Source: Penicillus capitatus (taxonomy: Eukaryota > Plantae > Chlorophyta). Taken from it: 64,000 nt of DNA. Shown here piece after piece: positions 15,201 to 54,000 of the stretch. The notes below the pieces were generated by a model. The model ran no database searches. It was not told the DNA's origin and saw only the letters and a program-made list of their open reading frames with translations. Location: contig OZ287703.1 of NCBI GenBank assembly GCA_965649825.1, positions 434,001-498,000 on the forward strand, in the 5' to 3' direction. A program made the translations under genes and the position numbers. Position 1 is the stretch's first letter. Each line of letters begins with the position of its first letter.

Positions 15201-18200
15201 GGGTAGGCAGAATTCACTCTTGGCAATACTCTGAGTAGAGCGACGGAGACGATTGAAGAGTTCATGACAGTTCCTGATGTCTCCTTTTTCTAATTCGTGA
15301 TTCGTGCTTCTTCTCTTATCTTCGAGTAGGTAAGACATGATGTCGATGTGGAATTCGACCGCAGTATTCAATTCATCTGATAATGCAAAACTGCTATCTG
15401 ATGATCGCAGTACAAGGTCGAATTGTTCCACAGCTGAATGCACCAACTTGTCATCTCCATCTTCGTCATTTGCTTCGGGTGCGCTTGAAGTCGATGGACC
15501 CGAAGTATTTGAAGCACCTCCTGTAAAGAACTGATATGTTTTCTGTATTCCTGCTTGGACCATTCGACCACCAGCCTTTACTACATTGCTGGCTCTCCAT
15601 AGAGCTCCTTCGTTTTGAAGTGGCAGCTTGGCGAGTAACTGGTAGATCTTTCGCAAGATTCTCAGTCTGCTGAGATTCTTCTGGACATCTAGGATCTCCA
15701 ATGCGCAGAAATCTTCATGCGCAGGGACCAGCAAGCCTTCAGGAAGAAGCAGCGTGGTCTTCCAATCCAATGCGCTCAACGCAAAAGCAATACCAGTTCT
15801 GTTTCTCTCAGCTGTCGATGCATCTGTACTCCTCATCAATCTGACGATGGAACGAGAGAGCTTGGTGTCCGACTCGCAGATGACTGCCGACAGCCTCTTC
15901 TGGAGATTGTACTTGACAGCTCGATCTGTGCTGCGACTCAAGTGTTTCTCCAATACACCAACCTCTTCTCCAAAAACCTCTTTCTCCAAAGGAAAGAAGC
16001 AGCACAGCAGATGCTTGATCTGGGAGATCTTCTGAAAAAGCTCTCTGACGCGCTCGAATTCTTGGTTGCGGTTTCTGAACTGCACGTCAAGGATGCAGAA
16101 CACAGCGTCCAGCACAGAGCACATATCTTCGAGAAAGGCTTTCCTCAATTTCCAGTCTGCGAACGTGGACTGTGATATGAATTCCTTCGTCTGTGAGATC
16201 AGTCTCTCTGGATTCTGACAGAAGTACTTCAGAATCTTCTCCTCTTTTTCTGAAATGTCTTTGAAATACTCGGACAGCAGTCCTCCATGGTCTCGGCACA
16301 GCTGGACGACTTCTGGAACAGTGCAAACACCTTCAACGATATCGACTGCGTTTTCTGCTTCCTGTGGGTGCAGACGGCAGAAGTAGTCCTTGATGGAGAC
16401 TGCCAGAGATCTGGAGGCTTCTGCATGTAGGTGGGCATTCTGCATGTGCTTCAGCAGATGCTTCATGCACGCACGCAACAACGATGCAAACACGAACTGA
16501 AGGTCTCTGCTCTCCTTCTGGAAGGGAGTGAGAGCATCTCTGCCACTGCTGACGCAGTAGAACTTGTGGAGGGGAAGCGATGACGTGTCTACGCAAGACT
16601 CGTGAATGGCCTGCTGCAGTCTCTTCAGATCCTCATTCGTCTCGACGATGGCTGCATACACTCGCCACAATCCCCACACGACTGCGTTGAACAGAGGCTC
16701 TCCCCTTTCCAGCCAGGTGCGGATGACAGAAAGGGCCTGCTGCAGCATCCTGAAGCTGATCTTGGAATCGCGTGTGAGGGCGATCCGAGACGTCTGCACC
16801 AGTTGCCTGACCCTGGCATGGAAGGCCACGGCGAGAATGGCGGCCACACTGCCGCCTTCGACGGATCTGAGTGCTTCCGAGGCGATCTCGACCGTTTCAT
16901 GGCTCTCCAGCAGGCGCACGTCTGGATCAAGCACATCTCCGTCGATCTCGGGCAGCCAGATCTTGATCATTCTGTTCAGCAGCGGGTTGGAGAGTCCGAA
17001 GGTGTTGATCTTCTTCCTGTCTGCCGTCGCAAAGATGCGGGTGGTGGGATGGATGCCGTCGCCGGGCTTCAGCTCCTCGCCCTCCGAGTGCTCGTATAGG
17101 CTGAGGAACGGGGTCTCCTCGAACAGGGACAGCAGTCGCTCGATCACGTCCGGCGATGCCGCATTGATGTTGTCGAAGAGGACGAACGACCCTGACTTCA
17201 GCGCCTTGATCATATCAGACTCCACGAACTTGAAGACGATCGAGGAAGAGGCATCCCCAGAGGAGATCGCGCTTTCCTTGAGCTCGTCTGCCGCACGCAC
17301 CAGCGACTGCCACTTCGTCAGCTTGCATCCCTTGAGAGTCTCGAGCGCAAGCTGCACGCGCTCGACAACCTGCTCCATTTCCTGGGGCGTGCCAGTCTCG
17401 GCGCCCTCTGTGTAGCAGGCCTGCATGGCTCCGTAGAATTCGGCTCTCCTCTTCTGCGATAACTTCCCTGCTATCCTGAGTCCGAGCCTCGCCGCGTCGT
17501 CTCTCAGTCTGAACACCTTCTTCGACAGCTCGGATGCGACGTTGCTAGCGGAGACGGGGAGCCACTGTCCGATGAGGTCGGACACTTCGAAGTCCCGGTG
17601 CAGGGACAGTACCAGCAGAGGGACGCCAGCGAGGGATGCCAGTTCCCTCACGAGGGAAGTCTTCTTGGAGCAGGTGGGTCCCTCCAGGAGCACCGCTCTC
17701 TGCGACTGGCTGGCCGTCGCCAGCAGCTCCAGCTGCCTGATGGTCTTCACCGTGTGCACCAACGATCCCTGAGACGCGCGAGCTTCGTGCTTCTCCATGT
17801 AAACGTTCCCGATCCGGACGAGGTCTCCCACAGACAGGTCGATGGACGGGCTGTCGCTCTGCTCCAGTTCCATCTGAGGCGGCTTGACGACTTCGTCGAT
17901 GGTGCGCTGGATTTGCTCTTCGGCGGATCGGTTGTCGAACCGGTGCTTGAACACCAGCTGCAGGGCCTTGCGGATGACGCTCGTGACCACTGGCCTCTTG
18001 TCGAAGCTCTCCTCGCTCTGTTCGGTATCGTCGTCGCAGGCCATCAGTCTGTGGTGGGAGATCTGCGTCTCGATGTTCCCTGCCACGATGTCGTGGACGG
18101 ACTTCAGGTCCCTCAGGTTCAGCTTGTGCTTGCGGTTGGCTCCCTGGATCTCGCCCTTCTCAACCGACTGCTCGACCTTCTTGTAGACGTCGAACACGTG

Positions 18201-21200
18201 CTGCAGGTCTTCCTCTCTCACGAGCCCTTTCTCGATGAGACCCTCGAACTGCTTTCCCAGGATCTGCTTGAGGTCCTCGCTGTCGTAGCCCTCGATCTGG
18301 ACGACCGTGAACGTGTTCTTGATGGACCTCGACAGCTTCGCCCTTCCTCCGCCCTCCGCCGCGGGATTCATCGTGGCAAAGATGCGAGTTCCGCGCACAG
18401 CGACGGGCTTCGAATCCAGCTTTCCAGGGACAGAGAAGCCCTCTGCCTCTGCAGACCCGTTGAGCAGCGGGACGAGGGATTCCAGCACCTGGGCCGGCAG
18501 CAGATTGACCTCGTCCAGCAGAATCCACCTCTGCGATTTCAGGGCCTTCAGCAGCTTTCCGTCCCTCCACTCGAAGACCCTGCGGTTGTCGATGTACATC
18601 GGCATCACCGACCCGTACAGCTGCTCGACGGATGTGTCGCTGGAGCAGTTGATGCGCTCCAGATCGGTTCCGAGGAATTTGGCCACCTGGGTGATGACGC
18701 CAGTCTTTCCTATTCCAGGAGCTCCTTCGAGCAGCAGGGGCGAGTTCGTGCAGATGGAGGCAAATATGCGAGCCATGTTCTCCCGCACGGAAGCAGTCAC
18801 GCAGAGGGACAGTTCGGGAAGCCGATCGTCACCGGACGGCGTCTCCAGTGTCCGAGGCACACTCAGAGACAGTCCTTGCCCCATCAGCGAAACCACCCTG
18901 CCAGCGTCGCCAGCCGTCTCCTCGATTTCGAACGGATTCCTTTCCACAGGAAGCTCGAGGTCGGACTTCAGCTTCTCGAACTCGTCCGAGAAGATCTTCT
19001 GAAGCACCTCGTTCTGGATGTCGGTTGGATACCCTGTTAGGTAGAAGAACTTGGCTCCCAGCATGCATCTCTTCCGGATGCTCAGGTGTCTCGGATGCGC
19101 CGTCACAAACGCGATCCATCTCAGAATCCTCCTGAAGTCCTCGCAGGGATGCTCTGGGTCATCGCCGACGACCTCGGATCGGACACCCTTGATGCTGCCC
19201 ATCACGTAGGGCAGGGACTCCACTTCAGTGGCATGAAGCGTGCGTCGAAGCTTCTCCTCTGCGATGGACATGATGTCAGGGGTGCCATAGACAGGGACTC
19301 GAATCTGCGTCAGTCTGCTTTGCGTGGCAGCGCTGAGCTGCGGCTTCTTGTTCTCTGAATCCAGGTGCGAAGTGGCAATGAAGCAGTATCCCTTCTTGGG
19401 GATCTCCATTTCTGCAGCCACTCTGGCTGAGAAGGACACGTCTTCCGGAATGCTGAACGTCGGATCCACTTCCAGCGCGCTGTTCAGTCTTTCAGTCACT
19501 GCCTGTGCACAGAGATCGTAGTCTTCCACGACAAACGCGTGCTCCATGGTGATTGCTTTGACGAATGGGCCGTCTCTGAACAAGAAACAGGGCTTGGTGT
19601 TTTGTGCGTCGCGAGAACGGACGAACATTCTCAGCTGCTCCAGTCGACGTACCATTCTCTGCACAGCAGCAGGGATCTCTTCTCCCAGAATTTCGTTTAC
19701 TAACTGCATGATCATCGCAAGAATCTCATCGAGTGAACGCAAGTAATCATCCTCTGTTTGCTCATCTATCCTTATCGCTAGATAATCCGCGTCATCAACA
19801 GCCATACCAGCGAAAGTGGGCTCTAATGTTGGCACCTGTTCTTGTACGTTATGTCCGGTTTCTTCGTTATACCCGATCTCGTCTGGCAAACCATAGACAG
19901 AATCACTTTCTTCGGCTTGATCGAAATCATATGCTGCTGCGTAATCATCTGACATATCGTCATCCTCTGTCTCTTCTTCAAGAAGGTGCGAATCAGTAGG
20001 AGCTCCGTTGGTATTCATGGATGGTGATCCAGAGGCACTGCGGTTATCCTTTTCTACGTTTACCCAGTCAGTAGATACGCCAGGTGAATTTTCTTCCTCG
20101 TCACATTCTTTTGTTGCATCAAACTGATATACTTTGCTGTAGCTATCTTCCGAAACAGCGTCATTGATACTCTCGTTCGATACAGGGGGAGATTTGGCAT
20201 TGCATTCCTGCTCTGCATCAACTGCTGCATCATCACTTGGTGTTTTGTTTTCCTGTTGCCAGTTCGACTTCTGTCCACTAAGAACATCAATCAGTTGCCT
20301 GATTATTGTCACTAGCTGTTTCTGAAGGTTTTGCATTCGGGCAATGTTCAGAGATGTCCATGGCGATTCTGTCCTTGATGTCGACTGACAAATCAGGCAT
20401 GAGAGGACAAAGGCTCCAGTTGAAGCAAGGTTTTCAAGAACCTCCACGAAGGACACCAATTGCACTTGGCCAATGAGGTCTGTCGCTTCAGACTGCGAAG
20501 TCAAGTGGACGCGCTGCACGCTCTCCGTCATCCCCGACAGCTCCAGCCACGTCTTGATGAGTTCCGTCTTGAAGGCAGATTCTCCGAAGAGGAGCACTGG
20601 CTCGTTGGCCTTCAGAGCAAAAGCCAGATCGACCAGCTTGTCCTGGAAGACGGCAGGAGGACCATTCCCAGAGAGACTGTCCCTCCAAAGCGGACTGTTG
20701 TCGAGCTTGAATCCGTGGAAGTGGACGTGGAGCTTTCCTTGGAAGAAGCTCACGCCTTGGCGTTCCCGCTTGACGTGCTTCCGTGCGCAGGCCTCTGCCT
20801 CAGTGACGCCGCCGGATCCGAAGCTGGACTCGATCAGTTGCATCAGCCTGGATGTCTCCTCTGTCGTGGTCGCCCGAGGACCCAGCAACGACATCGCCGT
20901 CGCCGCCCAAGTCACTCTCTGCCGCCCTTCGTCCTTCAGCATCTTGTATCTGCGCACGATCTTGACGATGTCTCTCATAGTCAGACGGAGTCCGTCGGCC
21001 GATGCGAAGTAGAGCTCCGCCAGAGCCCTGGAATCCATCTCCTCCGCGATGCCCTCGTATCGTCCGCCTCTGAACTTGTCTCTGACGATCTCTTGCAGCT
21101 CGTCCCGGGGGAAGTCCTCCACGTCGACTGCCAGGAAGCGGTTCCGCACGGTGATCGGCAGCTGCTTCCTGCCGTCGTTCCCGCCGCGAGACGGATTCTG

Positions 21201-24200
21201 GGTGGCGAAGAACCTGAAGTCCGGATGGACGCTCACCCTCATGTCGCTCCCGGGAATCTGGACGGTGCAGTTCCCCTCCAGGAACGGCATCAGAGCAGCG
21301 ATCACGGCGACGGGGGCCAGATTGAACTCGTCGGAGATGAACCAGTCGCCGCCCTCCATCGCCTGGACGAGGATCCCCTTCTGGAAGGAGAATCCGCTGT
21401 CCGACGGGATCCAGGTTCCGAAGTAGTCCTGGATGGTGGTCGTGTCGCTGTTGCTCAGCACCCTCACCGACTTGTCGACGCCTCCGAATCCCTTCAGGCC
21501 CTGCACCAGAGACGTCTTCCCGACGGCCGGCTTTCCTTCGAGCAGCACCGGCTTGTTGACAAAGGCACCCAGGAGCACCGCCTGCGCGTGCGCCTTCCTC
21601 GACTCGGTGAGCACCAGATCGGAGCTCTTCTCGAAGCGATCGAGCAGTCTCAGTTGGCCGAGCGCATCGCTCGGACATCCCATCTCGGCACACAGAGAGC
21701 GCCTCAGGTCGCCGTCCCTCATCTGGGCGGCGAACGCGACCGTCATCGCGCAGTGCAGGGCGACCTGGTCTTCCACCTCCGGCCTCCGGATCATCAGCAC
21801 GGTCGCGACGTCGATCAGGGTGGCAAAATCCCTGAAGGACACGAACATCTGGGTGCTCTCCGACACGAAGCGTCTGATCCTCAGACAGTAGTCCGAGATC
21901 GCGTTGAGCGATGCCTCGCAGCGATCCCTCGGCAGACAGCAGCGGACCATCGCCTCCAGCGCCCCGCGGAACTCGTCGTCCGGTCCGCATGCGGGATCGT
22001 CGATGTGGATGGTGACGAAGCGGTTGAACAGGGCGGCCGTGAGCTCCTTGGACAGGCTGTCCATTCCCCTGGCGGCGACGCCCTTGGGCGTGAAGGTGGC
22101 GATGAACTGGAAGCCTCTGGCCGGTCCAGGAGTGCTCGACCACGTTCCGTCCGCAAGCACGCGACACCTCAGCGCCTCCGTGTCTCCCCTCTCTGTCAGG
22201 CACAGCACCTTGGGGGACTCCAGCACCGGATTGATCCTCTCCTGCAGGACCGGCTCGGCCTGGCCGATGTTGTCCACGATGCAGACGCTGCCGTCTTTAA
22301 AGGCCCTGGTCAGCGGACCGTCCCTCCACTGCACGATGCCCTCGCCGACGGGACTGCTGCTCGGCAGGCACTCTCCGAGCATCGCGGACGGCTCGCTCTC
22401 CTGAGTAAGGGTGACCTGCTCGTAGTGGTTTCCCAGGAGAAAGGCGATGACCTTTCCCAGACAGGTCTTGCCTGAACCGGCTGTTCCCTCTATCAGGACG
22501 GGCTGCTCGCTGCGAACGGCCTCCGCCACGGAGACGAGGTGCTGGCACATCTGATCGCTGAGGACGACGGGCATCTCGGGAACGGACGACGTCATCGGTG
22601 GCACATCCGCGATACCGAGGTCGAAGTGCTGCGCGAAGACGTCGAAGACGTCGCTCCTTGCCTGGTCGTGTCTGATCCTTGAGCAGTATATCTCGGTTCC
22701 CAGCCGTCCCAGTCCTGTCCAAGCGTCGGTTCCCAACAGGCGATTCTCCAAGGCGCCTGCGATCCACTTGGCCAGCCAGGACTCCGAGAACGTGGTGTAG
22801 ACGCCGAACGTCTTCGTGAATTCGGCACTCTGGATCTTCCTCAGCACCGCTCTGTGGACGGCGGCGCATGCATCGAACGCCTTCCTGGCATCCTCGTCCG
22901 GAAACGGCTCGCTCGAGAAGTGGGTTGTCCAGAACTGGTCCACGAGTGTGACGTCCTTCTTGAGACATGGTCCCTGGATCCTGGCGAACCTCTCGATCGC
23001 GTCTTCCAGTCTGGGCCCCTCGGAGCTGAAGGTCAGTTTGCGTTCGCCGATGACTTTCTGGACCAGCTGCCGTCCGTCGCCTCGAAAACGGCATCCGTAG
23101 ATCAGCCACGCGTGGTCGCCCAGCTTCTCTTCTGCCTGGACGAGTTCCTCTTCGGCCAGAACCATGTCCGTCCACATCAGCAGCTCGCGGTTGGTGATCG
23201 TCGCGTAGCTTCCCTTCTCGGAGCAGCCCTCTGCGATCCTCTCTCTGACGTCGCAGTGGAAGTCCGTCATCTGTTTAGCCAGTTTTTGAATCAGCTCTGG
23301 GTTGTTGTCTCTTCCCTCGGCGATCTTCTTCTCGACGATCTCCCTCCACTCGTCTCTGGGGAGCTCCTTGAAGTGCATGATGGAGAACTGGGACATGAAG
23401 GCGTCGCTGAGGCGCTCCCTCTTGCCCGCCTGCCAGGGGTTCTGGGCGGCAAACAGGCGAAAGTCTGGGTGCTTCTTGATGAGGGTGGTGGAGGACAGGG
23501 CGGAGCTCTGGTCGCAGACGGTTATCTCTCCGGACTCCATCGCATCGATGACGACCTTCAGAGCGCCCTCCTCGGCAAGGTTCATCTCGTCGAGCAGAAC
23601 CCAGACGCCGTTCTTGAAGCTGTCGGCAAACGGCTGGAGCTCCTGGACGATCTTGCCGCTGCTGTCTACCGTCACCTTGGCCAGGAAGTCCTCGGGAGTG
23701 AGGTTGGACGACATGTTGATCCGAACGAACTTCACTCCTCTGCGGCGACACACCTCCGTGAGTGTGGCTGTCTTCCCCACCCCGGTGGATCCGATCAGCA
23801 GAACAGGGTTGCCGTCGGCGACCACCTCCTGGATCATTGCGATGTTCTCTTCGGTCGTGGCTGTCAGGATCATGGATCTCTCTTTGGACTCGGCTGCACC
23901 GTCCTCTTCCTTTTCCTTGCACGGAGGCCTGTACGTCTGGAGCACGGCGTTGCGCAGGTCGCTGCTCTCCAGAGACAGGTTGGGTCGCTCGAAGGTCTCG
24001 ATCATCCTCCTCAGGTCCGTCAGAGATGCAGTCTCTGACTGGATGCCTTGGCCAGCTGGGAATCTCGCGGAGGAGAAGGGTGGTATGGCGGCGTAGTTGT
24101 CGGATGGACGCGCTTCCACTTTGTGGACTAGAGCGTTTCGGCCATCGAGGATAAAGCAGATCAGCTCCATCAAGGAATTGATTCTGCCTTTCCCATCGCA

Positions 24201-26291
24201 TTCACGCATCAGGCCAAAGAGCTCGCCGAGTGCAGAGAAGAGAGCAGCCTTGAGTGGTTCTGTTCCTTCGCTGGAAGGATCGGTGAGATTGGTCAGCAGG
24301 TGGGAGAAGAATTTGACATCTTCAATGCTCTCTATCCCAGCTGCCGCATTGCATGCTGCTGCAATGACTTCTTTTAGAAGGTCTGCGGACTGGTCAGCCA
24401 ATACGGCTACAAATTTAGCGAAATCTTCTGCTGAGATTTTGGCGCACGCCAACTGATCAATGTCAGACATCAAGGCGTCTACTGCACACTGGAGATCGTC
24501 TCCTTTAAGCAGACAGATCAGATGAACCACAGATAGTGCGGCATCATGAGCAAAGTCTCCTTTAATTGAATGTGACAGCATTGTCTTGCACACTTTGCCC
24601 CAATCCGTGTCTGATGTCTGGATGGTGTTGCGAACTGCTATACGCCCAGCATCAGATTGAAGAAGAGAGACTGCAGCACTCAGCAACCATTCAATGTCTT
24701 CATTCTCTGCCTCCTCACACAGTTTCATAACAGCAGTCGCATCCTCCGGTTGTAGATTTCTTGTCCATTTATCGATCATTCCATGTGAACAGAACCCATT
24801 GGATAGACAAACAAATGACTCATAGTCCAAGTCGGCTAGCTTCAACAACTCGGAAAAAACAGAAAAAGATGTTCTTCGATCGATATAATCGGAAATGGTT
24901 TTAACGGCGGAATGCATTCGGAAGTTGGAATCCTGCCCTTTATCCAATTTTGTATTAGATTGAATGGAGAGAAATGTCCTGAGCAAAGATTCAACAAAAA
25001 AACTGTTCATGTTGGAGGCTGTCACAAGCTTAGCCTCGTCTGAAAAGAAAAGAGAGAGTAAATGCAATCGCTCACAGATCCATTGTTTCTTTTCTTGGTT
25101 TTCGTTGTCATAGCAACTAATATGATGAGAGCAGGCGTCAAAAAGATGCGAGGTTATGTTGAGAACGTCACTCCTAACACAAAAAGAAACCATCGTGCAA
25201 ATGTCGTCAAATGACAATATAGAACTCGCGCGGTACAACACAGGAGAGGCAAAGAGAAACTCAATGGTATCGATGAGAAGTATCGCATTGGTACGGTTCC
25301 CAAATGTCAATCCATTAAGAACTAAGGCAACTGCATCTGTGCCTTCTAGAGACATAAGTGTGCTTAGAACGGCATCGAGTTGGGGTTTTTTGAAAGCCGA
25401 ATCGCCCTTGTACAATTCTATTAGGTTGCTAACGAAAGGATGCATTGTGTTTTCCATTGTATGGGCGGCGCTCAAGGCAGACAGAAGTATTCGATCGGGT
25501 CGCACACGGGGACCAAGTTTCTTTGCTTGGTCGAGGTTGTCAATTCTGCCGTCGCTCCAAATGACCTCTGTCGCTTCCTTCACGTCAATTTCTTTGAGCC
25601 CCACGGCACCGGCAATTTCGGGGAATGTCGCTGTCACTGTTATGGAATCGAAGAACATCGACAGAAGCTCTCGAGAAGTGAGGACGCTGTTTACGATGTC
25701 TGGCGTCCATTTACTGTCTCTCATTTTGGGAATCGGAAACAAGCTGCCTTCATGGGCATCGGAGTCGTCACAGACGATTTTCTGCAGGAGGCAGAGGATG
25801 TCGTCGATGTCATCGCCAGACAATCCTCCCATTCCAAGCACATCCAGAAGGTATGCCCCGTTAGGCTTCTTACATTCATTCGTCGGTTTCAGATTCGGAG
25901 ACTTTTTGAGCATGAACACAGCTGTCACCCCAAGCTTCGAAGCATCGTACTCTCTTTCGCGAAAGAGGATGTCGTAGACGGTCTGTCTATTTTCAGTAGA
26001 TGCCTTTTCCATAAACCAGTTCAGAATCTTTGCCAGTGGACCACATGCGGCGTTCTTTGATTTGAATAGCCTGACGGCATACGCCTGAACGATACAGAAA
26101 AAGAAGATACTGCTGCCGTTTTTGGTGATGTCCGTCCCTTCCATCTCGACGGAACCCCGACGTATCATTGCATCGACTTCGCGGCGAACATCAATCAAAG
26201 CTCGGTCTTCTCCCATGCTTAACGAACGCTTCAACGCGTCTTGGAGCTGCCAGACCCCAATCCATTTGTTTTGCTTTTCTTCTTTTTTTGG
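220..26291 (-). CDS. Gene A: giant midasin/Rea1-like AAA+ protein (6 AAA modules, Ig-like repeats, 4 VWA domains), about 8,600 aa, spliced at the 3' end
   Basis: The 8233-aa ORF (1533-26234) continues through four GT-AG introns (1516-1562, 1140-1192, 897-949, 394-446) that keep the frame and join the downstream VWA ORFs; stop TAG at 220-222 (...AIFLGHL*). Main exon is 1563-26291 (24,729 nt, open from an acceptor-like tgtctttag). Six Walker A/B pairs are visible. The segment before VWA2 (LENILPQNRFTRKRADIQGPSIHLPGFIKHIV...YSVALLLDISASM) resembles the midasin pre-MIDAS motif. The true 5' exon is unresolved (candidate ATGs at 26333 and 26393). Confidence 0.93.
300..3480 (-). other. Four tandem VWA/MIDAS domains at the C-terminus of gene A
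   Basis: VWA1 WCIVVDNSGS..QGT..IVDG; VWA2 VALLLDISAS..LST..ITDG; VWA3 ICFALDCTGS..VAYKDYGD..GGTDTPED..IGDAPGHG; VWA4 FIFCLDESGS..VIQFDD..GNT..MSDG. VWA3 and VWA4 are reconstructed across introns. Confidence 0.88.
394..1562 (-). other. Four short spliceosomal introns in the 3' end of gene A (47, 53, 53, 53 nt)
   Basis: GT...AG boundaries at 1516-1562, 1140-1192, 897-949 and 394-446. Removing them restores one frame and continuous VWA motifs (EQIK|GISEH, DDR|YPEG, NCE|VNSRLGFHFIFCLDESGS, RLQ|EMAAAA). Confidence 0.88.
7290..8970 (-). other. Array of about five Ig-like beta-sandwich modules (ASH/PapD-like) in gene A
   Basis: Beta-rich units of about 100-110 aa with motifs such as ISIDFGTHLY..VEVMNRT, EEIDFGVLL..IFIRNVTDLPL, GCLRVKNTGDVPVVFSI and GKLEITP..VKPGETMSRDVKINTTG. 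Boundaries are approximate. Confidence 0.62.
15670..19705. repeat. Inverted near-identical tract 2, left arm (pairs with about 48405-52440)
   Basis: The reverse complement matches gene B colinearly with a constant coordinate sum of 68109 (shadow ORF pairs 19324-19521/48588-48785 and 15808-16005/52104-52301). Only scattered substitutions by eye. Confidence 0.92.
16700..23900 (-). other. Six-module AAA+ ring of gene A (midasin/MoxR/dynein-related clade)
   Basis: Walker A/B pairs: GSTGVGKT/LLDEMN; GTAGSGKT/IVDNIG; GKPAVGKT/ISDEFN; GESAFKT/VVEDYD; GAPGIGKT/LLDEVN; GPTCSKKT/LFDNIN. Sensor-I motifs FAAQNP, FATQNP, FATMNP. Inserts lie between Walker A and B in modules 4 and 6, as in Rea1. Confidence 0.92.
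20450..24420. repeat. Inverted near-identical tract 1, left arm (pairs with about 43900-47870)
   Basis: The reverse complement matches gene B with a constant coordinate sum of 68319 (the 671-aa shadow ORFs 20460-22475 and 45844-47859). Stretches of more than 100 nt are identical, e.g. 23750-23858 versus 44461-44570. Confidence 0.93.
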
Positions 26292-28471: not shown

Positions 28472-28831
28472 GGATGCTGAATGACGACGCCTGATGCGAG
28501 AATGACGATAATCTATGGACGCAACACTCTTACAAACATTGAACATTGATCGTTGTCTTATGCCATTGTTCTAACAAGCGTCATGATGACAGCTCGGAAA
28601 AGTTTATGCAGATTTGGAAACAATATTAAGATAGTGCGAAACTAGGAGGCTTTGTGCTTACAAGTTAACTGTCGCATTCAAACACGTGACTGATGTTAAA
28701 AACACTGACATTGCGGCTTTCATGTCATTACTTTTTTGGATCCCATCGAGATGAGCTTACAACGTGGAAGTGATGCCAAATGGCCTTTGGCACAAGAAAG
28801 CAATTGGCTGCTGTGAAATGTGTAGATGCAT

Positions 28832-30802: not shown

Positions 30803-31433
30803 AGAGGCAATCTCTGGTATTAGGCGATCGTGCACTTAGCCACCGTTAAACAAAAAATAACGACGACGTCTGTTGAGCCCTTTCGATCTCGCAGTCTTTT
30901 CGGATTTCCTTAGTGACGCCTATCTTCTCGAGATGCCTTCCTTAACTCTCAAAACTCGTCGTCACACCGACTAATGGTCTCATCGCAACATCTAAAAAAT
31001 TTCTCTGCAGATGACGGACGGACTGCCTTCTGACATGTGTTACTACCACTTCCCGGCAATCCCGGGTGTCGATGAACACCATCACGAACTGTGCGTTGAA
31101 ACTGAAGAAAACACGACTCAAATGTCGTCCACGTGCCGAAAAGAAGAAACAAGAGTTCGAACAGATCGTTTTAGTCGACCACGTTTGACAGATATAAATC
31201 CATCGTGTACGCCGCCCCCTTAGTGAGAGAGAGAGACGACTGTGGCGTTGTTGATTAAACAAAGATGACATGAAACTTCCGGGAAACGTTTGAAGGAACG
31301 GGTGCAAGACTTCGTTTCATTATTTATGGAGATTATGAGAGCGATCTCGTTCTCAAGCCATGAGAAAGGAACGATCAAAATACGATGATTTGAGGTGAGA
31401 AGGTATCATAGATTTCCGACCGAAGTACCAACA

Positions 31434-42060: not shown

Positions 42061-45000
42061 ATGGAACCGTCATGGAAATGGTTCGAGCTCTCAGTGCTTC
42101 AAGAAGCGCTGAAGGATTCTCTCGACGCAACAGACAACAACGCCCTCGAGAACATGTGTTTAGCAATTGACGCCATTATAAGTCGCGGGTCCATCGAGAC
42201 AACGGAAACTGACCTAACAAACGCTGGCATGGTTGTCTTCTTCAAATGCATTGTTCAGGCATATGCGGTTAAAGTCTTCAAAACAAAGACGGTCGCAAGC
42301 GGCCCGCTATCCCGGATCTTGAACTGGTTCGTGAAGAACATATCTTCTAAACAGCGACGTGTCATTTTCGAAATCCTCTTTTGTGAAAAAGAATACGATG
42401 CTTCAAGACTTCAGGTGGCCACTGTTGCAAAGAAGAAGGAAGGGAAAATGAAGCTAGAGAGAGACATTAAAAAGGCCAGCCCTACAATACTTCTCCAGCT
42501 ACTTGCTCTCACGAACTTCACAAATCAGGAAACTGATGCTGTTCTCAACCTACTGCTGTACGCCATTTGCAAAGATTCTGACAGTGATGTCAACACGACG
42601 TCTTCAAAGCCAAGGACTGGCGAAAAAACCATCGAGGACGAAATGATCGCTTCCAAAGAGCTCTTGTCCCTGTTCCTCAATCGTTCACTAATCTCAGACA
42701 CGCCTCATGGAAACACCAGTGCAGAAATCACCGAAGAGATCCAAGCGGATGGACACATCGATGTGTCCCAACACGATAGTGAATCGAAGGAAGATCAGGA
42801 GGCAGATCATGGAGACGAGTCAATTTCTGACACACTCCTTGTGACTGCTATGAACACCTGTTCATCCGAGGATGCATTTTCTGCATTTCTTTCCAACCTC
42901 AACACGCTTTACAATGGATCTCTCGTTTTCAAAAAACCACAACTCCATAGAATCCTAGAAACAATGTTGTCTTTAGAGGAGGTGGACGCCTCTGCCTTTC
43001 TGCTTGGGGGAGTGAAATCTGAACTAGTTGACAACGTGGCCCTTTTTTCTGACATTGCTGAGTATCTGTTTGTAGCACCTGTTCTGTATCTCACTAGTCC
43101 AGTATTGTCCTTTGACAATATCTGTGGATTGATTTCTCTTTGTGCCGAACACATTGTCTTAGAAACTCCATTGCGTTTTCCTGATGTTTTTAGTGTTTTT
43201 GTTAAGCATTCCGAAGTTAAAGATGGGAATACTCAGTGGATCTGTGAACGTCTGCATCTGCTGTCGCTGTTCCTTTCAGATGAAACGGAGTCTGTCGATG
43301 CGTCGAGCATCAGTGAAGCTTTTGTTGAATCGTTGTTTGCCGCGTTTCTAACCCTAGAAGATCAAATGCACTGGGAAGATGAGGAAAATCTCCATTTCGA
43401 TGTGTTTGCGGATCTTACAACAATAATTGAATACTGCCACAAGAACGCATCTTTTCCTGTCTTTTCCAGCCTTTTAAAGGTTTCTCAGCTGAATATTGAT
43501 GTGTTTACTCAACTGTCTGGAAAGTTCTGCTCACCTGGAATGATGTATAGATGGGGCAATCAGCCCGATACAGAGGATGTGATCGCTCTTCTGGAGCTCT
43601 GCAAAGTACCTCAGAGCGAAAGCATTGAATGGGTGCTGATGGCATTGGAATCTCTTCTTGAGTCCGAAGCCGGTCGCAATGAGATATACAATTCTCAAAG
43701 AAGCGATGCTGATTGGATTGAAGTGTGCGGAACATTGCTCGACAAATCTTCTAAGGAGTCAATGGCCACCAAGGCAGTGCCAGCTTTAGTGCGCCTCGCA
43801 TGTACCCTCGGCAAAGATAAATGCATCCATCCGATCAATGCCCTGATGTCCGAGATAGAGCAACTACTGTGTGCTGAACTCTCAACAGAGGATTTCTCCA
43901 AATTTGTAACCGTACTGGCTGACCTGTCCGCAGACCTTCTAAAAGAAGTCATTGCAGCAGCATGCAATGCGGCAGCTGGGATAGAGCGCATTGAAGATGT
44001 CCAATTCTTCTCCCACCTGCTGACCAATCTCACCGATCCTTCCAGCGAAAGAACAGAACCACTCAAGGATGCTCTCTTCTCTGCACTCGGCGAGCTCTTT
44101 GGCCTGATGCGTGAATGCGATGGGAAAGGCAGAATCAATTCCTTGATGGAGCTGATCTGCTTTATCCTCGATAACCGAAACGCTCTAGTCCACAAAGTGG
44201 AAGCTCGTCCATCCGACAACCACACCGCCGCCATACCACCCTTCTCCTCCGCGAGATTCCCAGATGGCCAAGGCATCCAGTCGGAGACTGCATCTCTGAC
44301 GGACCTGAGGAGGATGATCGAGACCTTTGAGCGACCCGGTCTGTCTCTGGAGAGCAGCGACCTGCGCAACGCCGTGCTGCAGACGTACAGGCCTCCGTGC
44401 AAGGAAAAGGAAGAGGATGGTGCATCCGAGTCCAAAGAGAGATCCATGATCCTGACCGCCACGACCGAAGAGAACATCGCAATGATCCAGGAGGTGGTCG
44501 CCGACGGCAACCCTGTTCTGCTGATCGGATCCACCGGGGTGGGGAAGACAGCCACACTCACGGAGGTGTGTCGCCGCAGAGGAGTGAAGTTCGTTCGGAT
44601 CAACATGTCGTCCAACCTCACTCCCGAGGACTTCCTGGCCAAGGTGAATGTGGACAGCAGCGGCAAGATCGTCCAGGAGCTCCAGCCGTTTGCCGACAGC
44701 TTCAAGAACGGCGTCTGGGTTCTGCTCGACGAGATGAACCTTGCCGAGGAGGGCGCTCTGAAGGTCGTCATCGATGCGATGGAGTCCGGAGAGATAACCA
44801 TCTGCGACCAGAGCTCTGCCCTGTCCTCCACCGCCGTCATCAAGAAGCACCCAGACTTCCGTCTGTTTGCCGCCCAGAACCCCTGGCAGGCGGGCAAGAG
44901 AGAGCGCCTCAGCGACTCCTTCATGTCCCAGTTCTCCATCATGCACTTCAAGGAGCTTCCCAGAGACGAGTGGAGGGAGATCGTCGAGAAGAAGATCGCC

Positions 45001-48000
45001 GAGGGAAGAGACAACAACCCGGAGCTGATTCAGAAACTGGCTAAGCAGATGACGGACTTCCACTGCGACGTCAGAGAGAGGATCGCAGAGGGCTGCTCCG
45101 AGAAGGGAAGCTACGCGACGATCACCAACCGCGAGCTGCTCATGTGGACGGACATGGTTCTGGCCGAGGAGGAACTCGTCCAGGCAGAAGAGAAGCTGGG
45201 CGATCACGCGTGGCTGATCTACGGATGCCGTTTTCGAGGCGACGGACGGCAGCTGGTCCAGAAAGTCATCGGCGATCGCAGCCTGACCTTCCGCTCCGAG
45301 GGGTCCAGACTGGAAGACGCGAACGAGAGGTTCGCCAGGATCCAGGGCCCCTGTCTCCGGAAGGACGTCACACTCGTGGACCAGTTCTGGACAGCCCACT
45401 TCTCCAGCGAGCCGTTTCCGGACGAGGATGCCAGGAAGGCGTTCGATGCATGCGCCGCCGTCCACAGATCAGTGCTGAGGAAGATCCAGGGTGCCGAATT
45501 CATGAAGACGTTCGGCGTCTACACCACGTTCTCGGAGTCCTGGCTGGCCAAGTGGATCGCCGACGCCTTGGAGAATCGCCTGTTGGGGACCGACGATTGG
45601 ACAGGACTGGGACGGCTGGGAACAGAGATTTACTGCTCAAGGATCAGACACGACCAGGCAATGAGCGACGTCTTCGACGTCTTCGCGCAGCACTTCGACC
45701 TCGGTCTCGCGGATGTGCCATCGATGACGTCGTCCGTTCCCGAGATGCCCGTCGTCCTCAGCGATCAGATGTGCCAGCACCTCGTCTCCGTGGCGGAGGC
45801 CGTTCGCAGCGAGCAGCCCGTCCTGATAGAGGGAACAGCCGGTTCAGGCAAGACCTGTCTGGGAAAGGTCATCGCCTTTCTCCTGGGAAACCACTACGAG
45901 CAGGTCACCCTCACTCAGGAGAGCGAGCCGTCCGCGATGCTCGGAGAGTGCCTGCCGAGCAGCAGTCCCGTCGGCGAGGGCATCGTGCAGTGGAGGGACG
46001 GTCCGCTGACCAGGGCCTTCGTCCAGGGCAGCGTCTGCATCGTGGACAACATCGGCCAGGCCGAGCCGGTCCTGCAGGAGAGGATCAATCCGGTGCTGGA
46101 GTCCCCCAAGGTGCTGTGCCTGACAGAGAGGGGAGACACGGAGGCGCTGAGGTGTCGCGTGCTTGCGGACGGAACGTGGTCGAGCACTCCTGGACCGGCC
46201 AGAGGCTTCCAGTTCATCGCCACCTTCACGCCCAAGGGCGTCGCCGCCAGGGGAATGGACAGCCTGTCCAAGGAGCTCACGGCCGCCCTGTTCAACCGCT
46301 TCGTCACCATCCACATCGACGATCCCGCATGCGGACCGGACGACGAGTTCCGCGGGGCGCTGGAGGCGATGGTCCGCTGCTGTCTGCCGAGGGATCGCTG
46401 CGAGGCATCGCTCAACGCGATCTCGGACTACTGTCTGAGGATCAGACGCTTCGTGTCGAAGAGCACCCAGATGTTCGTGTCCTTCAGGGATTTTGCCACC
46501 CTGATCGACGTCGCGACCGTGCTGATGATCCGGAGGCCGGAGGTGGAAGACCAGGTCGCCCTGCACTGCGCGATGACGGTCGCGTTCGCCGCCCAGATGA
46601 GGGACGGCGACCTGAGGCGCTCTCTGTGTACCGAGATGGGATGTCCGAGCGATGCGCTCGGCCAGCTGAAACTGCTCGATCGCTTCGAGAAGAGCTCCGA
46701 TCTGGTGCTCACCGAGTCGAGGAAGGCGCACGCGCAGGCGGTGCTCCTGGGTGCCTTTGTCAACAAGCCGGTGCTGCTCGAAGGAAAGCCAGCTGTCGGG
46801 AAGACGTCTCTGGTGCAGGGCCTGAAGGGATTCGGAGGCGCCGACAAGTCGGTGAGGGCTCTGAGCAACAGCGACACGACCACCATCCAGGACTACTTCG
46901 GAACCTGGATCCCGTCGGACAGCGGATTCTCCTTCCAGAAGGGGATCCTCGTCCAGGCGATGGAGGGCGGCGACTGGTTCATCTCCGACGAGTTCAATCT
47001 GGCCCCCGTCGCCGTGATCGCTGCTCTGATGCCGTTCCTGGAGGGGAACTGCACCGTCCAGATTCCCGGAAGCGACATGAGGGTGAGTGTCCATCCGGAC
47101 TTCAGGTTCTTCGCCACCCAGAATCCGTCTCGCGGCGGGAACGACGGCAGGAAGCAGCTGCCGATCACCGTGCGGAACCGCTTCCTGGCAGTCGACGTGG
47201 AGGACTTCCCCCGGGACGAGCTGCAAGAGATCGTCAGAGACAAGTTCAGAGGCGGACGATACGAGGGCATCGCGGAGGAGATGGATTCCAGGGCTCTGGC
47301 GGAGCTCTACTTCGCATCGGCCGACGGACTCCGTCTGACCATGAGAGACATCGTCAAGATCGTGCGCAGATACAAGATGCTGAAGGACGAAGGGCGGCAG
47401 AAGGTGACTTGGGCGGCGACGGCGATGTCGTTGCTGGGTCCTCGGGCGACCACGACAGAGGAGACATCCAGGCTGACGCAACTGATCGAGTCCAGCTTCG
47501 GATCCGGCGGCGTAACTGAGGCGGAGGCCTGCGCAAGGAAGCACGTCAAGCGGGAACGCCAAGGCGTGAGCTTCTTCCAAGGAAAGCTCCACGTCCACTT
47601 CCACGGATTCAAGCTCGACAACAGTCCGCTTTGGAGGGACAGTCTCTCTGGGAATGGTCCTCCTGCCGTCTTCCAGGACAAGTTGGTCGATCTGGCTTTT
47701 GCTCTGAAGGCCAACGAGCCAGTGCTCCTCTTCGGAGAATCTGCGTTCAAGACGGAACTCATCAAGACGTGGCTGGAGCTGTCGGGAATGACAGAGAGCG
47801 TGCAGCGCGTCCACTTGACGTCGCAATCTGAGGCGACAGACCTCATTGGCCAAGTGCAATTGTTGTCCTTCGTGGACGTGCTTAGCAGTCTAGCATCAAC
47901 TGGAGACTTCATCCTCTCTTACCTGGGCCAACAATTGACAGAAAAGTCAAAACCGCCTACACTGAAATTAAAGAATGTGTATATCTGCGATCTTCGAGAA

Positions 48001-51000
48001 CGATTGCGCAGAAGAGTCCTGCAATTCAAACACAAATTGTGTCGACAGGAATACGATATTGGCGATGAAGATAGCTTCTCTGCTGTCAATCTGTCTGATA
48101 CAGTTGCCACTAGCAACACTCAAGATAAGCAGACAAGTTCTAATAGTGAATACGAAGATGATTATTCAGAATTCAGTTCCAAGATCTCATCAGACGACAG
48201 TGCCACCAATGAAACCGATGAGGATAATGTTGATGACTCAGAAGACTCAAGAACGTATGAGAAGGAACATGATGTGCAAGGATCAAACTCAGTAGAGCCT
48301 AATACGTTCGACCAAGCTTCAGATTCTTTAAAAGAGAAGAGCGCCGAGTTAGCTGAAGACGACCACTTGACATTCATAGATGATGTCATTTTAAAAATCC
48401 CGGTGTTGGTAAACGAAATTTTGGGCGAAGAGATCCCTGCTGCTGTGCAGAGAATGGTACGTCGACTGGAGCAGCTGAGAATGTTCATTCGTTCTCGTGA
48501 CGCACAAAACAGCAAGCCCTGTTTCTTGTTCAGAGATGGCCCGTTCGTCAAAGCAATCACCATGGAGCACGCGTTTGTCGTGGAAGACTACGATCTCTGC
48601 GCACAGGCAGTGACTGAAAGACTGAACAGTGCACTGGAAGTGGATCCGACGTTCAGCATTCCGGAAGACGTGTCCTTCTCGGCCAGAGTGGCTGCAGAAA
48701 TGGAGATCCCCAAGAAGGGATACTGCTTCATTGCCACTTCGCACCTGGATTCAGAGAACAAGAAGCCGCAGCTCAGCGCTGCCACGCAAAGCAGACTGAC
48801 GCAGATTCGAGTCCCTGTCTATGGCACCCCTGACATCATGTCCATCGCAGAGGAGAAGCTTCGACGCACGCTTCATGCCAGTGAAGTGGAGTCCCTGCCG
48901 TACGTGATGGGCAGCATCAAGGGTGTCCGATCCGAGGTCGTCGGCGATGACCCAGAACATCCCTGCGAGGACTTCAGGAGGATTCTGAGATGGATCGCGT
49001 TTGTGACGGCGCATCCGAGGAATCTGACCATCCGGAAGAGATGCATGCTGGGAGCCAAGTTCTTCTACCTGACAGGGTATCCAACCGACATCCAGAACGA
49101 GGTGCTTCAGAAGATCTTCTCGGACGAGTTCGAGAAGCTGAAGTCCGACCTCGAGCTTCCTGTGGACAGGAATCCGTTCGAAATCGAGGAGACGGCTGGC
49201 GACGCTGGCAGGGTGGTTTCGCTGATGGGGCAAGGACTGTCTCTGAGTGTGCCACCGACACTGGAGACGCCGTCCGGTGACAATCGGCTCCCAGAACTGT
49301 CCCTCTGCGTGACCGATTCCGTGCGGGAGAACATGGCTCGCATATTTGCCTCCATCTGCACGAACTCGCCCCTGCTGCTCGAAGGAGCTCCTGGAATAGG
49401 CAAGACTGCCGTCATCACCCAGGTGGCCAGGTTCCTCGGAACCGATCTGGAGCGCATCAACTGCTCCAGCGACACATCCATCGAGCAGCTGTACGGGTCG
49501 GTGATGCCGATGTACATCGACAACCGCAGGGTCTTCGAGTGGAGGGACGGAAAGCTGCTGAAGGCCCTGAAGTCGCAGAGGTGGATTCTGCTGGACGAGG
49601 TCAATCTGCTGCCGGCCCAGGTGCTGGAATCCCTCGTCCCGCTGCTCAACGGGTCTGCAGAGGCAGAGGGCTTCTCTGTCCCTGGAAAGCTGGACTCGGA
49701 GCCCGTCGCTGTGCACGGAACTCGAATCTTTGCAACGATGAATCCCGCGGCGGAGGGCGGAGGAAGGGCGAAGCTGTCGAGGTCCATCAAGAACACGTTC
49801 ACGGTCGTCCAGATCGAGGGCTACGACAGCGAGGACCTCAAGCAGATCCTGGGCAAGCAGTTCGAAGGTCTCATCGAGAAAGGGCTCGTGGAAGAGGAAG
49901 ACCTGCAGCACGTGTTCGACGTCTACAAGAAAGTCGAGCAGTCGGTTGAGAAGGGCGAGATCCAGGGAGCCAACCGCAAGCACAAGCTGAACCTGAGGGA
50001 CCTGAAGTCCGTCCACGACATCGTGGCAGGAAACATCGAGACGCAGATCTCCCACCACAGACTGATGGCCTGCGACGACGATACCGAAGAGAGCGAGGAG
50101 AGCTTCGACAAGAGGCCAGTGGTCACGAGCGTCATCCGCAAGGCCCTGCAGCTGGTGTTTAAGCACCGGTTCGACAACCGATCCGCCGAAAAGCAGATCC
50201 AGCGCACCATCGACGAAGTCGTCAAGCCGCCTCAGATGGAACTGGATCAGAGCGACAGCCCGTCCATCGACCTGTCTGTGGGAGACCTCGTCCGGATCGG
50301 GAACGTGTACATGGAGAAGGACGAAGCTCGCGCGTCTCAGGGATCGTTGGTGCACACGGTGAAGACCATCAGGCAGCTGGAGCTGCTGGCGACGGCCAGC
50401 CAGTCGCAGAGAGCGGTGCTCCTGGAGGGACCCACCTGCTCCAAGAAGACTTCCCTCGTGAGGGAACTGGCATCCCTCGCAGGCGTCCCTCTGTTGGTAC
50501 TGTCCCTGCACCGGGACTTCGAAGTGTCCGACCTCATCGGACAGTGGCTCCCCGTCTCCGCTAGCAACGTCGCATCCGAGCTGTCGAAGAAGGTGTTCAG
50601 ACTGACAGACGACGCGGCGAGGCTCGGACTCAGGATAGCAGGGAAGTTATCGCAGAAGAGGAGAGCCGAATTCTACGGAGCCATGCAGGCCTGCTACACA
50701 GAGGGCGCCGAGACTGGCACGCCCCAGGAAATGGAGGAGGTTGTCGAGAGCGTGCAGCTTGCGCTCGAGACTCTCAAGGGATGCAAGCTGACGAAGTGGC
50801 AGTCGCTGGTGCGTGCGGCAGACGAGCTCAAGGAAAGCGCGATCTCCTCCGAGGATTCCTCTTCCTCGATCGTCTTCAAGTTCGTGGAGTCTGACCTGAT
50901 CAAGGCGCTGAAGTCAGGGTCGTTCGTCCTCTTCGACAACATCAATGCGGCATCGCCGGACGTGATCGAGCGACTGCTGTCCCTGTTCGAGGAGACCCCG

Positions 51001-54000
51001 TTCCTCAGCCTCTACGAGCACTCGGAGGGCGAGGAGCTGAGGCCCGGCGACGGCATCCATCCCACCACCCGCATCTTTGCGACGGCGGACAGGAAGAAGA
51101 TCAACACCTTCGGACTCTCCAACCCGCTGCTGAACAGAATGATCAAGATCTGGCTGCCCGAGATCGACGGAGATGTGCTTGATCCAGACGTGCGCCTGCT
51201 GGAGAGCCATGAAACGGTCGAGATCGCCTCCGAAGCACTCAGATCCGTCGAAGGCGGCAACGTGGCCGCCGTTCTCGCCGTGGCCTTCCATGCCAGGGTC
51301 AGGCAACTGGTGCAGACGTCTCGGATCACCCTCACACGCGATTCCAAGATCAGCTTCAGGATGCTGCAGCAAGCCCTGTCTGTCATCCGCACCTGGCTGG
51401 AAAGGGGAGAGCCTCTGTTCAACGCCGTGGTGTGGGGATTGTGGAGAGTGTATGCAGCCATCGTCGAGACGAATGAGGATCTGAAGAGACTGCGGCAGGC
51501 CATTCACGAGTCCTGTGAAGACACGGCGTCGCTTCCCCTCCACAAGTTCTACTGCGTCAGCAGTGGCAGAGATGCTCTCACTCCCTTCCAGAAGGAGAGC
51601 AGAAACCTTCAGTTTGTGTTTGCATCGTTGTTGTGTGCGTGCATGAAGCATCTGCTGAAGCACATCCAGAATGTCCACCTAGATGCAGAAACCTCCAGAT
51701 CTCTGGCAGTCTCCATCAAAGACTACTTCTGCCGTCTGCATCCACAGGAAGCAGAAAACGCAGTCGATATCGTTGAAGGTGTTTGCACTGTTCCAGAAGT
51801 CGTCCAGCTGTGCCGAGACCATGGAGGACTGCTGTCCGAGTATTTCAAAGACATTTCAGAAAAAGAGGAGAAGATTCTGAAGTACTTCTGTCAGAATCCA
51901 GAGAGACTGATCTCACAGACGAAGGAATTCATATCGCAGTCCACTTTCGCAGACTGGAAATTGAGGAAAGCCTTTCTCGAAGACATGTGCTCTGTGCTGG
52001 ACGCTGTGTTCTGCATCCTTGACGTGCAGTTCAGAAACCGCAACCAAGAATTCGAGCGCGTCAGAGAGCTTTTCCAGAAGATCTATCAGATCAAGCATCT
52101 GATGTGCTGCTTCTTTCCTTTGGAGAAAGAAACTTTTGGAAAAGAGGTCAGTGTATTGGAGAAACACTTGGGTCGCTGTACAGATCGAGCTGTCAAGTAC
52201 AATCTCCAGAAGAGGCTGTCGGAAGTCATCTGCGAGACGGACACCAAGCTCTCTCGTTCCATCGTCAGATTGATGAGGAGTACAGATGCATCGACTGCTG
52301 AGAGGAACAGAACTGGTATTGCTTTTGCGTTGAGCGCATTGGATTGGAAGACCACTCTACTTCTCCCTCAAGGCTTGCTGGTCTCTGCGCGTGAAGATTT
52401 CTGCGCGTTGGAGATCCTAGATGTACAGAGGAAGCTCAGCAGAATAAGCATCTTGAAGGAAGTCCATGACTTGCTCAAAGTGTTACCGCTTCCAGAAGAT
52501 AAGAATTTGCTGCACGTCGACAACAGAAGCTTGTTTGGCTTGGGTGTGAAAGCTATCCGTGACACAGTCAGCGCTTTTCGCAATTTTGTCTTTGGAAGTT
52601 CGAGATCTGACATCTCTACGCATAGCAAAGGCCTAGAAGAGGCCGAGTCGGTAAATATCGCTGTAGAACGATTGCATCTTATATTACGATCTTCGGACAG
52701 CTGTTTTGCGTTATCCGATGAATTGTTGGCTGCAGTGGATTTCCATGTTGACATCATGTCTTACCTGCTTGAAGATAGAAGAAGAAACAAGAATGCCACA
52801 CTGACCCGAGGAGACATCAGGAACTGTCATGAACTCTTCAATCGTCTCCGTCGCTCCACACAGAGTATTGCTAAGAGTGAATTCTGCCTACCCTGGATTG
52901 CTCTTTTCGAGTCTTCTGTCAAAATCGACGTCCCATACAAGATTGTGAGATGCTCCCAAGAGAATTTGGACAGGGAGATCTTTGATGGAGAGGGTCCCAC
53001 GAGTGCTGTTCTTTTGGTTGGCGACCTCGACTCAGGCACCAGCCTGTCCGATCTGGTTTCTCTTGTGCTCTTTGAGAAAGAAGCATCTAGTTCTGACTCT
53101 GAGAAGATACATGTGAATGTGCTGCACTACATGTGGAGCAAAGAATGCTCATCTAAGAAAAAGTGGATGGAACAATGGACGAAGAACCATAAAGACAATT
53201 ACTGCTTTTCCTTTTCCGAAGAAGAACTGCTCTCTGTTGATTCTTTTCCCAGGCAGCCTCTTTCCAGACTCGGCATCACGATTGTTGCCTGTCTCTCCAC
53301 TTTGGCCATTCATGGAAAAGACGGTGGAGTAGAGGGAAAGAGAGCCAGTGATGTGAATCAACGATTCATCTCCGGTCTGGAGAAGCAGATGACTTCTTAC
53401 TTGAGCGAAGTAGAGCTTTGGTCGAATAAGGAAGATGATAACTTGTTCCATCACCTGGTTCAACTGGATGCCTGTCTTGTTCAAAGTCAAAAGCAAGGAT
53501 TAAACGAGAACGGCAAATCCCTAGATAGATTTCTTCGAGTGTTCTCCGAAGTGAAGCTGATGGCAGAAGAGTCAAAGCTAGAAAAAGCACTTGATGCCAT
53601 TAAGGAGAAACTGCTGGCATCTGGATGGCAGTCAACATCTATTGCTTTCAGCTTCAGGAACTTAATGATAAAACTGGCCGATTATTCTGTCCAAGAACTG
53701 ACCTCATGCCTAAACGAGCTTCTCCGACAAACAGAATCCAAATTTGGTGACTATCTTATCGCTATGGACATGATCGCCTCAGTTTTGAAACTCAAGAAAT
53801 TACTGATACAGTACGCAACAGAATGTCTTGATGCTGACGATCTAAGCGTCTGGAAGAAGTGCAACGATCTGTGTTACTTTGTTTCAGAGGTCGTTAAGTA
53901 CTTCATTGACTTTTTGATCGTGAAAGATGACAAAATGGAGCTCAACAGATCAAAACCTCTGGAAGATTTCGATCAGTGGCATGAAGCTCTTGTCAAACAG

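Follow-up and report, generated by a model that had tools for sequence, protein, structure and literature searches.

Domain-restricted concerted evolution with a probable GC bias in a pair of giant midasin-like genes from a siphonous green alga

Midasin (Rea1, MDN1) is the AAA+ remodeller of ribosome assembly. Concerted evolution that is restricted to certain domains and accompanied by a raised GC content at third codon positions (GC3) is known in vertebrates from the clustered protocadherins. In the palindromes of primate sex chromosomes, GC-biased arm-to-arm conversion keeps the identity of the arms above 99.9%. Plastid genomes and the yeast 2-micron plasmid occur as isomers in about equal amounts, the 2-micron plasmid having its own recombinase. 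Among the cases reported for mammals there are gene pairs that have been under gene conversion for over 100 million years (PMC2720389). Here we describe a stretch of 64,000 nucleotides from Penicillus capitatus (contig OZ287703.1, positions 434,001 to 498,000 of the forward strand), referred to as the window, which contains two giant reading frames, gene A and gene B, placed head-to-head and pointing apart. A and B are ancient paralogues encoding giant midasin-like hexa-AAA+ proteins that can be aligned end to end with 69.5% amino-acid identity. Two segments of their ATPase ring, called tracts 1 and 2 below, are nearly identical, and very probably recurrent, GC-biased gene conversion between the two loci keeps them so, while the modules outside the tracts stay old. 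The case is one of domain-restricted concerted evolution with GC bias, a process of a known kind in a striking setting.

The pair resembles the converted gene families of vertebrates in that paralogues within a species are closer than orthologues, the homogenisation is partial and has sharp edges, the flanks are orthologous, and GC3 is raised. It differs from them in being an intronless 25-kb gene pair of a microbial eukaryote, with two tracts that are split by an insert within one AAA module. In addition, the GC3 contrast within one frame is unusually large (0.8 versus 0.4-0.5), and the genes are homogenised both in tandem and in head-to-head layout. As in the sex-chromosome palindromes, inverted repeats on the same chromosome are kept near-identical and a crossover between the arms could invert the spacer, but here the arms are inner parts of ancient diverged genes, they share 96-97% identity, and no spacer inversion has been seen. 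The long inverted repeats around a unique segment also recall the flip-flop of plastid genomes and of the 2-micron plasmid; unlike these systems, the A/B locus has been found in one arrangement and with parental linkages only.

Two near-identical tracts within diverged reading frames

Inverted pairs within the window were located by a repeat search, and third-position identity was obtained from a codon alignment of A versus B. One pair spans 4110 nt with 96% identity (tract 1). The other spans 3739 nt with 97% identity (20362-24100 and 44219-47957) and extends for another 390 nt with 92% identity (24087-24476 and 43840-44229), yielding tract 2. Both tracts are in frame, with a single one-codon indel at the 5' edge of tract 2. 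Third-position identity between A and B is 0.92-1.00 in the tracts, whereas in the N-domains, in the insert that splits the fourth AAA module (AAA4 insert) and in much of the tail it is only 0.33-0.49, i.e., saturated. The transitions are abrupt: over only 60-120 nt, identity rises from about 0.5 to 0.93 or more at each of the four edges in A (around 24450, 20450, 19700, and 15690).

The first-pass annotation of the window had described N-domains that are only recognisably homologous, sharp boundaries, and a collapse of identity within the AAA4 insert. The saturated third positions, together with an N-domain synonymous divergence (dS) of about 2, the steps at the four edges, and the half AAA_5 match behind the insert agree with this description, and the sliding-window identity rules out a uniform divergence, showing two high tracts between saturated blocks. 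Two tracts of about 4 kb were also confirmed, although the identity of 97-99% first given for them is too high overall (96-97%) and corresponds to their cores (97-100%). The N-domain of A, which had been placed from 26291, begins later, because the frame opens at 26234, with 26216 as the position of its first ATG. Finally, the patchy identity noticed downstream of tract 1 is real, as the tail repeat pairs I3-I7 and I9 are inverted and share 71-88% identity (83% in I7), but the label "Ig array" given to part of this region corresponds to weak and mostly sub-threshold Pfam matches. The tail tracts are listed here as older or less often converted.

The divergence is fairly even, 2-4%, over most of each tract. 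The differences between A and B in tract 2 are nevertheless over-dispersed (index 2.4), with a run of 432 nt of perfect identity (P < 0.0002).

Since the source is a long-read metagenome contig with 30x coverage (ERZ25074695 ctg340373, 495 kb), the tracts could have been collapsed or cross-assembled. We consider such an artefact extremely unlikely. The arms differ at 115 and 152 sites and hence they are not collapsed, both frames are open through every junction, and the architecture recurs, with the same edges, on another contig of this sample as well as on two from a different one.

Homogenisation within each of two species

Four additional contigs were used for comparison. Three of them (L002, L006, and L007) belong to a sister species, and L005 is a second contig from the sample of the window, representing a second haplotype or strain. 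L002 was reached with a fragment of the motor, and the other three by using the RING/RBR-like gene next to A as an anchor. The gene copies compared are thus four A haplotypes (A1, A2, A'1, and A'2) and two B genes (B1 and B') from two species, where the prime denotes the sister species, in which the products of one contig have 8284 and 7225 residues. A distant homologue from another organism (L001, about 50% identity) was also included. Trees were built by neighbour-joining with 500 bootstraps, and Jukes-Cantor (JC) distances were calculated.

In the tracts, dS between A and B is 0.067-0.079 (0.067 in tract 2), while between species (A-B', B-B', and A-A') it reaches 0.32-0.34. The N-domains give the opposite picture, with dS values of 0.45 for A-A' and 0.49 for B-B', compared with about 2 for A-B. 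Consistently, the trees of the N-domain and of the AAA4 insert are split by paralogue, and the tree of tract 2 is split by species, in all cases with 100% bootstrap. The JC distances in tract 2 are 0.023 for A1-B1, 0.057 for A'-B', and 0.135 across species, and in the sister species A' and B' share 95-96% identity in this tract compared with 87-88% across species. The two species also agree, to within a single 60-nt window, in the location of the 3' edge of tract 2. As homogenisation has occurred within each species, each lineage needs its own event after the split, and as the insert between the tracts has kept its orthologous history, tracts 1 and 2 also need separate events. These results place the homogenisation of the tracts after speciation and show that it took place independently in the two lineages.

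No part of the protein is better conserved across species than the tracts, where the ratio of nonsynonymous to synonymous divergence (dN/dS) is 0.18-0.25, and it could be argued that the copies stay alike because the motor is under extreme constraint, be it on protein, codons, or RNA. However, synonymous sites have been free to diverge between the species and not between the paralogues, and thus selection on the protein cannot explain the tracts. The contrast of dS 0.33 between species with 0.07 between paralogues refutes this explanation, to which we give practically no credence. Moreover, a single frame cannot have a domain-specific codon optimum, and the distant homologue has no GC3 island.

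A single recent event, i.e., a segmental replacement or partial duplication that copied the motor from one gene to the other with nothing ongoing, is a further possibility, because two sequences alone cannot tell one event from many and the divergence along the tracts is fairly even. We regard it as very unlikely, given that the trees of the six copies already contradict it. Homogenisation within both species is superimposed on a divergence of 13% between them, the two tracts were converted separately around an insert with orthologous history, and a GC3 near 0.8 in both species implies a bias sustained for long. The over-dispersed divergence, the 432-nt identical run, and the derived variants that B has in common with only one A allele do not fit a single event either. 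Such variants occupy 27 sites in the species of the window and 26 sites in its sister species. In addition, the distance of B1 to the A gene on the contig that they share (0.023) is smaller than that between the two A alleles (0.030). Over-dispersion, identical run, closeness of B1 to A, and one-allele variants all point to continuing activity. In the sister species, the allelic divergence is 3.3% in tract 2 versus about 1.5% in the flanks, as expected if variants of the paralogue were imported into the tract.

The tracts also stand out by their base composition. The GC contents at the first, second, and third codon positions (GC1/GC2/GC3) are 0.59/0.44/0.81 in tract 2 and 0.58/0.39/0.74 in tract 1, while GC3 is 0.38-0.51 elsewhere in the same frame, with 0.38 in the AAA4 insert of A. 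GC1 and GC2 are likewise raised in the tracts. A' and B' have the same GC3 islands and the same dip at the insert, and in the distant homologue GC3 is flat (0.51-0.53). Converted and unconverted segments thus lie within one 25-kb frame, where expression, position, and mutational environment are constant, providing a clean natural experiment in which the conversion process would account for the jump of GC3 from about 0.45 to about 0.8. Because expression and position do not change along one frame, GC-biased repair of heteroduplexes is the simplest account of the jump, and the islands may have been made by a repair of conversion heteroduplexes that was biased towards GC over a long time. The orthologue trees, the dS contrast, and the coincidence of the GC3 islands with the tracts strongly support the proposal of the first-pass annotation that the motor is kept uniform by repeated gene conversion and the accessory blocks are left to diverge.

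Several observations weigh against this interpretation, or at least limit it. When adjacent sites are collapsed, the three site patterns of tract 2 are not significantly clustered (65 runs versus 62 expected), and therefore discrete long conversion tracts are not resolved, although the site patterns could have been blurred if the assembly switched between haplotypes. Conversion is deduced here from assembled sequence. Among the A-B differences of tract 2 that could be polarised with an outgroup, 44 are weak-to-strong and 44 strong-to-weak; these balanced counts fit an equilibrium at high GC and are not in themselves a demonstration of bias. The tail tracts (83-88% identity) do not have a raised GC3. 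In principle, the GC bias could also come from a local hotspot of allelic recombination instead of ectopic conversion.

The mechanism that we propose is a repeated, non-reciprocal homologous recombination between A and B that would follow a non-crossover route. Each conversion tract would end where homology ends, i.e., at the N-domain, at the insert that splits AAA4, and at the region after AAA6, so that heterology would set the tract edges. The N-domain, the insert, and the modules after AAA6 would in this way keep separate histories that far predate the split of the sister species. Mismatch repair in the heteroduplexes would be biased to G and C, and over a long time it would generate GC3 islands inside a single frame. 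The coordinates of the tracts and of the other features are collected in Table 1.

Table 1. Location of the features of the A/B locus; positions refer to the window unless otherwise indicated.
Feature	Position	Strand	Remarks
Gene A	1533..26234	-	intronless open frame, 8233 codons
Gene B	42055..64000	+	frame open to window end, at least 7315 codons; ATG at 42061
N-domain of A	24477..26234	-	dS versus B about 2 (saturated); orthologous to A' N-domain, dS 0.45
N-domain of B	42055..43839	+	orthologous to B' N-domain, dS 0.49
Tract 2, A arm	20362..24476	-	AAA1-AAA3 and N-terminal half of AAA4; 96.9% identity to B arm
Tract 2, B arm	43840..47957	+	from repeat search and codon alignment
AAA4 insert of A	19764..20361	-	acidic, about 60 residues longer than that of B, 30-40% amino-acid identity to it
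AAA4 insert of B	47958..48345	+	orthologous to B' insert; dN/dS 0.88
Tract 1, A arm	15654..19763	-	from the C-terminal half of AAA4 through AAA5, lid, and AAA6 to about 400 residues past it; 96.3% identity to B arm
Tract 1, B arm	48346..52455	+	from repeat search and codon alignment
Short tract, pair I7	14744..15285	-	83%, just past tract 1; partner 52809-53350
Tail tracts in A (pairs I6, I3, I4)	4288..9291	-	83-88% to B; dS about 0.34; GC3 not raised
Tail tracts in B	58764..63770	+	partner of A 4288..9291
RING/RBR-like gene	29594..30835	-	cysteine-rich, 413 residues; in both species located upstream of A and sharing its strand
AAA_5 matches	residues 810-950, 1245-1398, 1562-1691, 2219-2308 (half a module), 2499-2639, about 2822-3089		Pfam
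Inversion breakpoint intervals	window 40084-41067; L004 11210-13402; L002 about 3477; L006 3629-4358		unique DNA

Gene orientation and the inversion question

In the sister species the genes are arranged in tandem, in the order RBR', A', ERCC4 gene, and B'. A single inversion of about 40 kb, the only one detected at the locus, explains the difference in orientation; the inverted segment takes in A together with the RBR gene, the upstream region, and 1.9 kb on the downstream side of A. These 1.9 kb are conserved in the sister species with 75-87% identity. In agreement with this, the DNA to the left of the window matches, in reversed orientation, a far upstream region of the sister locus. No repeats were found at the inversion breakpoints, and neither the window nor the DNA to its left contains a counterpart of the 5.7-kb ERCC4-bearing region that lies next to one breakpoint in the sister species. 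The head-to-head layout is therefore evolutionarily labile, and since the tandem genes of the sister species are homogenised as well, conversion does not depend on the layout. This result shows that homogenisation is independent of gene orientation: it goes on in direct or inverted layout, with stable edges that are probably set by the heterologous modules.

The first-pass annotation had also suggested that a crossover within either inverted tract would invert the middle segment. Under such a flip-flop, reciprocal crossovers would produce coexisting isomers in which the N-domains, with or without the AAA4 insert, are re-dealt as combinatorial variation. The geometry is valid, as the arms are inverted, about 4 kb long, in frame, and 96-97% identical, and a crossover in either tract leaves both frames intact. 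The locus is structurally labile, as the interspecies inversion indicates, and between the two contigs of the sample the divergence is about 10% for the N-domain of A, about 18% for its insert, and 3% for the tract in between. The linkages, however, are only parental. We have scored them on assembled contigs for the N-domain and the insert of the six gene copies, and all six copies conform: A1, A2, A'1, and A'2 combine an A-type N-domain with an A-type insert, and B1 and B' a B-type N-domain with a B-type insert. This indicates that no product of a crossover in tract 2 has been fixed or sampled since the species split (dS 0.33-0.45). Furthermore, the source contig runs unbroken through all four arms, the breakpoints of the interspecies inversion lie in unique DNA outside the genes, and the sister-species genes are direct repeats, so that a crossover between them would delete or duplicate instead of inverting. 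Altogether we consider flip-flop very unlikely; as a frequent or fixed process it is unsupported and the testable evidence is against it, while isomers that are rare or somatic could still occur. Near-identical inverted tracts inside paralogues are thus no evidence of an inversion switch.

Variable modules, encoded proteins, and neighbouring genes

The AAA4 insert has a dN/dS of 0.88 between B and B' and of 0.81 between A1 and A2, compared with 0.2-0.3 in the tracts and N-domains, so that its protein sequence changes rapidly. No other stretch of the A protein is as acidic as its insert (28% D+E).

The comparison of the window with L005 reveals a stepped profile. About 10 kb upstream of A are 97-99% identical, but no more than 100 nt from where the A frame begins identity falls to about 0.86, and the N-domain (24450-26300) averages about 90% (dS 0.22). 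Identity is back to 97% in tract 2 and drops to about 82% in the insert (19700-20450). Stretches located 10-12 kb upstream of A also reach 6-9% divergence, and therefore this haplotype signal is not unique to gene A. The haplotypes of the sister species lack such a step; their N-domains are 98-99.6% identical and tract 2 is the more diverged part. The stepped divergence between A1 and A2 may go back to a third family member from which sequence was imported, to balanced alleles of old age, or to haplotypes that diverged as a mosaic. A wider version of the import idea, for which this step is the hint, appears unlikely to us; in it the motor tracts are fixed recombination linkers within a small family of giant AAA+ genes, and the N-domain and insert modules are exchanged or overwritten from other family members. 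If true, the linker tracts would provide module-level allelic diversity to a machine of recognition or defence type.

The proteins encoded by A and B contain, according to Pfam, five to six dynein-type AAA_5 modules, a midasin-type lid (AAA_lid_7), and two C-terminal VWA domains (VWA and VWA_2 matches). AAA4 is split by the divergent block, and only the C-terminal half of an AAA_5 match comes after it. The MIDAS motifs of gene A are intact (DNSGS at residue 7593 and DISAS at residue 7968). In the tail there are weak Pfam matches, mostly below threshold, to Ig-like domains of the HYDIN/ASH/MSP type, and no internal repeats were found there by BLASTP. A PDB search with the motor gave midasin/Rea1 as the top matches (E = 7e-110), and named midasins are 24-31% identical to a part of the motor. 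A protein search with a C-terminal query retrieved only two distant JGI proteins, from a set in which very long proteins seem to be lacking.

Like midasin, these proteins have a single chain with six dynein-type AAA modules, an AAA_lid_7, and a C-terminal VWA domain with a DxSxS MIDAS motif. They are larger, about 8,200 residues versus 4,700-4,900 in the solved midasin chains, and unlike midasin they have two VWA domains, weak Ig-like modules in the tail, and no D/E-rich linker, and they form a paralogous pair. The two VWA domains show no sequence match to the MIDAS domain of midasin. A D/E-rich linker was not found before the VWA domains, the most acidic window of 100 residues (28%) being the AAA4 insert. 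Judging from these sequence features, A and B probably represent a separate branch and not an orthologue of the midasin of ribosome biogenesis. A brief literature search yielded no account of midasin-like giants in siphonous green algae or of a family of about 8,200 residues with two MIDAS domains, and this family of midasin-like proteins is brought to light here.

Regarding the start of A, the sequence at 26216-26300, upstream of its first ATG, is still homologous to the N-terminus of B, and A has no in-frame ATG where B has its start codon (42061). Possibly the start codon of A has moved, or A acquires a 5' exon by splicing. Just downstream of A, at 309-842 (minus strand), there is a reading frame of 177 residues with a weak VWA_2 match (E = 9e-4).

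The intergenic space between A and B covers 15.8 kb and holds the RING/RBR-like gene and a split PARG-like gene. The RING/RBR-like gene sits 3.4 kb upstream of A and is found at 10001-11389 in L005, L006, and L007. Its position beside A is reminiscent of RNF213, in which a dynein-like AAA core is paired with a ubiquitin-ligase module. The PARG-like gene (31434-32041, minus strand) encodes a microbial-type PARG catalytic domain that is split across two overlapping frames, due to either a short intron or a frameshift. No tRNA genes or Rfam families were found within the window. The only named relative of any neighbouring gene is a protein from Caulerpa lentillifera (41% identity).

Related loci carry long terminal repeat (LTR) retrotransposons and exon-split genes, on contigs of 0.9 to 7 Mb. 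A bacterial origin of the locus was considered and is ruled out by the LTR retrotransposons and exon-split genes, the RING/RBR-like gene, the paired haplotype-like contigs, the 0.5-Mb size of the source contig, and the related contigs of 0.9-1.3 Mb.

Mobile elements are also present in the contigs compared here. In L002, an LTR retrotransposon of about 4.7 kb (12814-17507; RVT, integrase, and gag-like) breaks B' in AAA1, inside tract 2. Its two 198-bp LTRs are 100% identical, indicating that the insertion is very recent. The truncated N-terminal product of B' has no second member in its cluster, which suggests that the other haplotype of the sister species lacks the retrotransposon in B'. An intergenic retrotransposon (RVT and integrase) occupies positions 1-2310 of L005, which joins the window at about 38536, and is absent from the window at that place, which makes the sample structurally polymorphic at this site.

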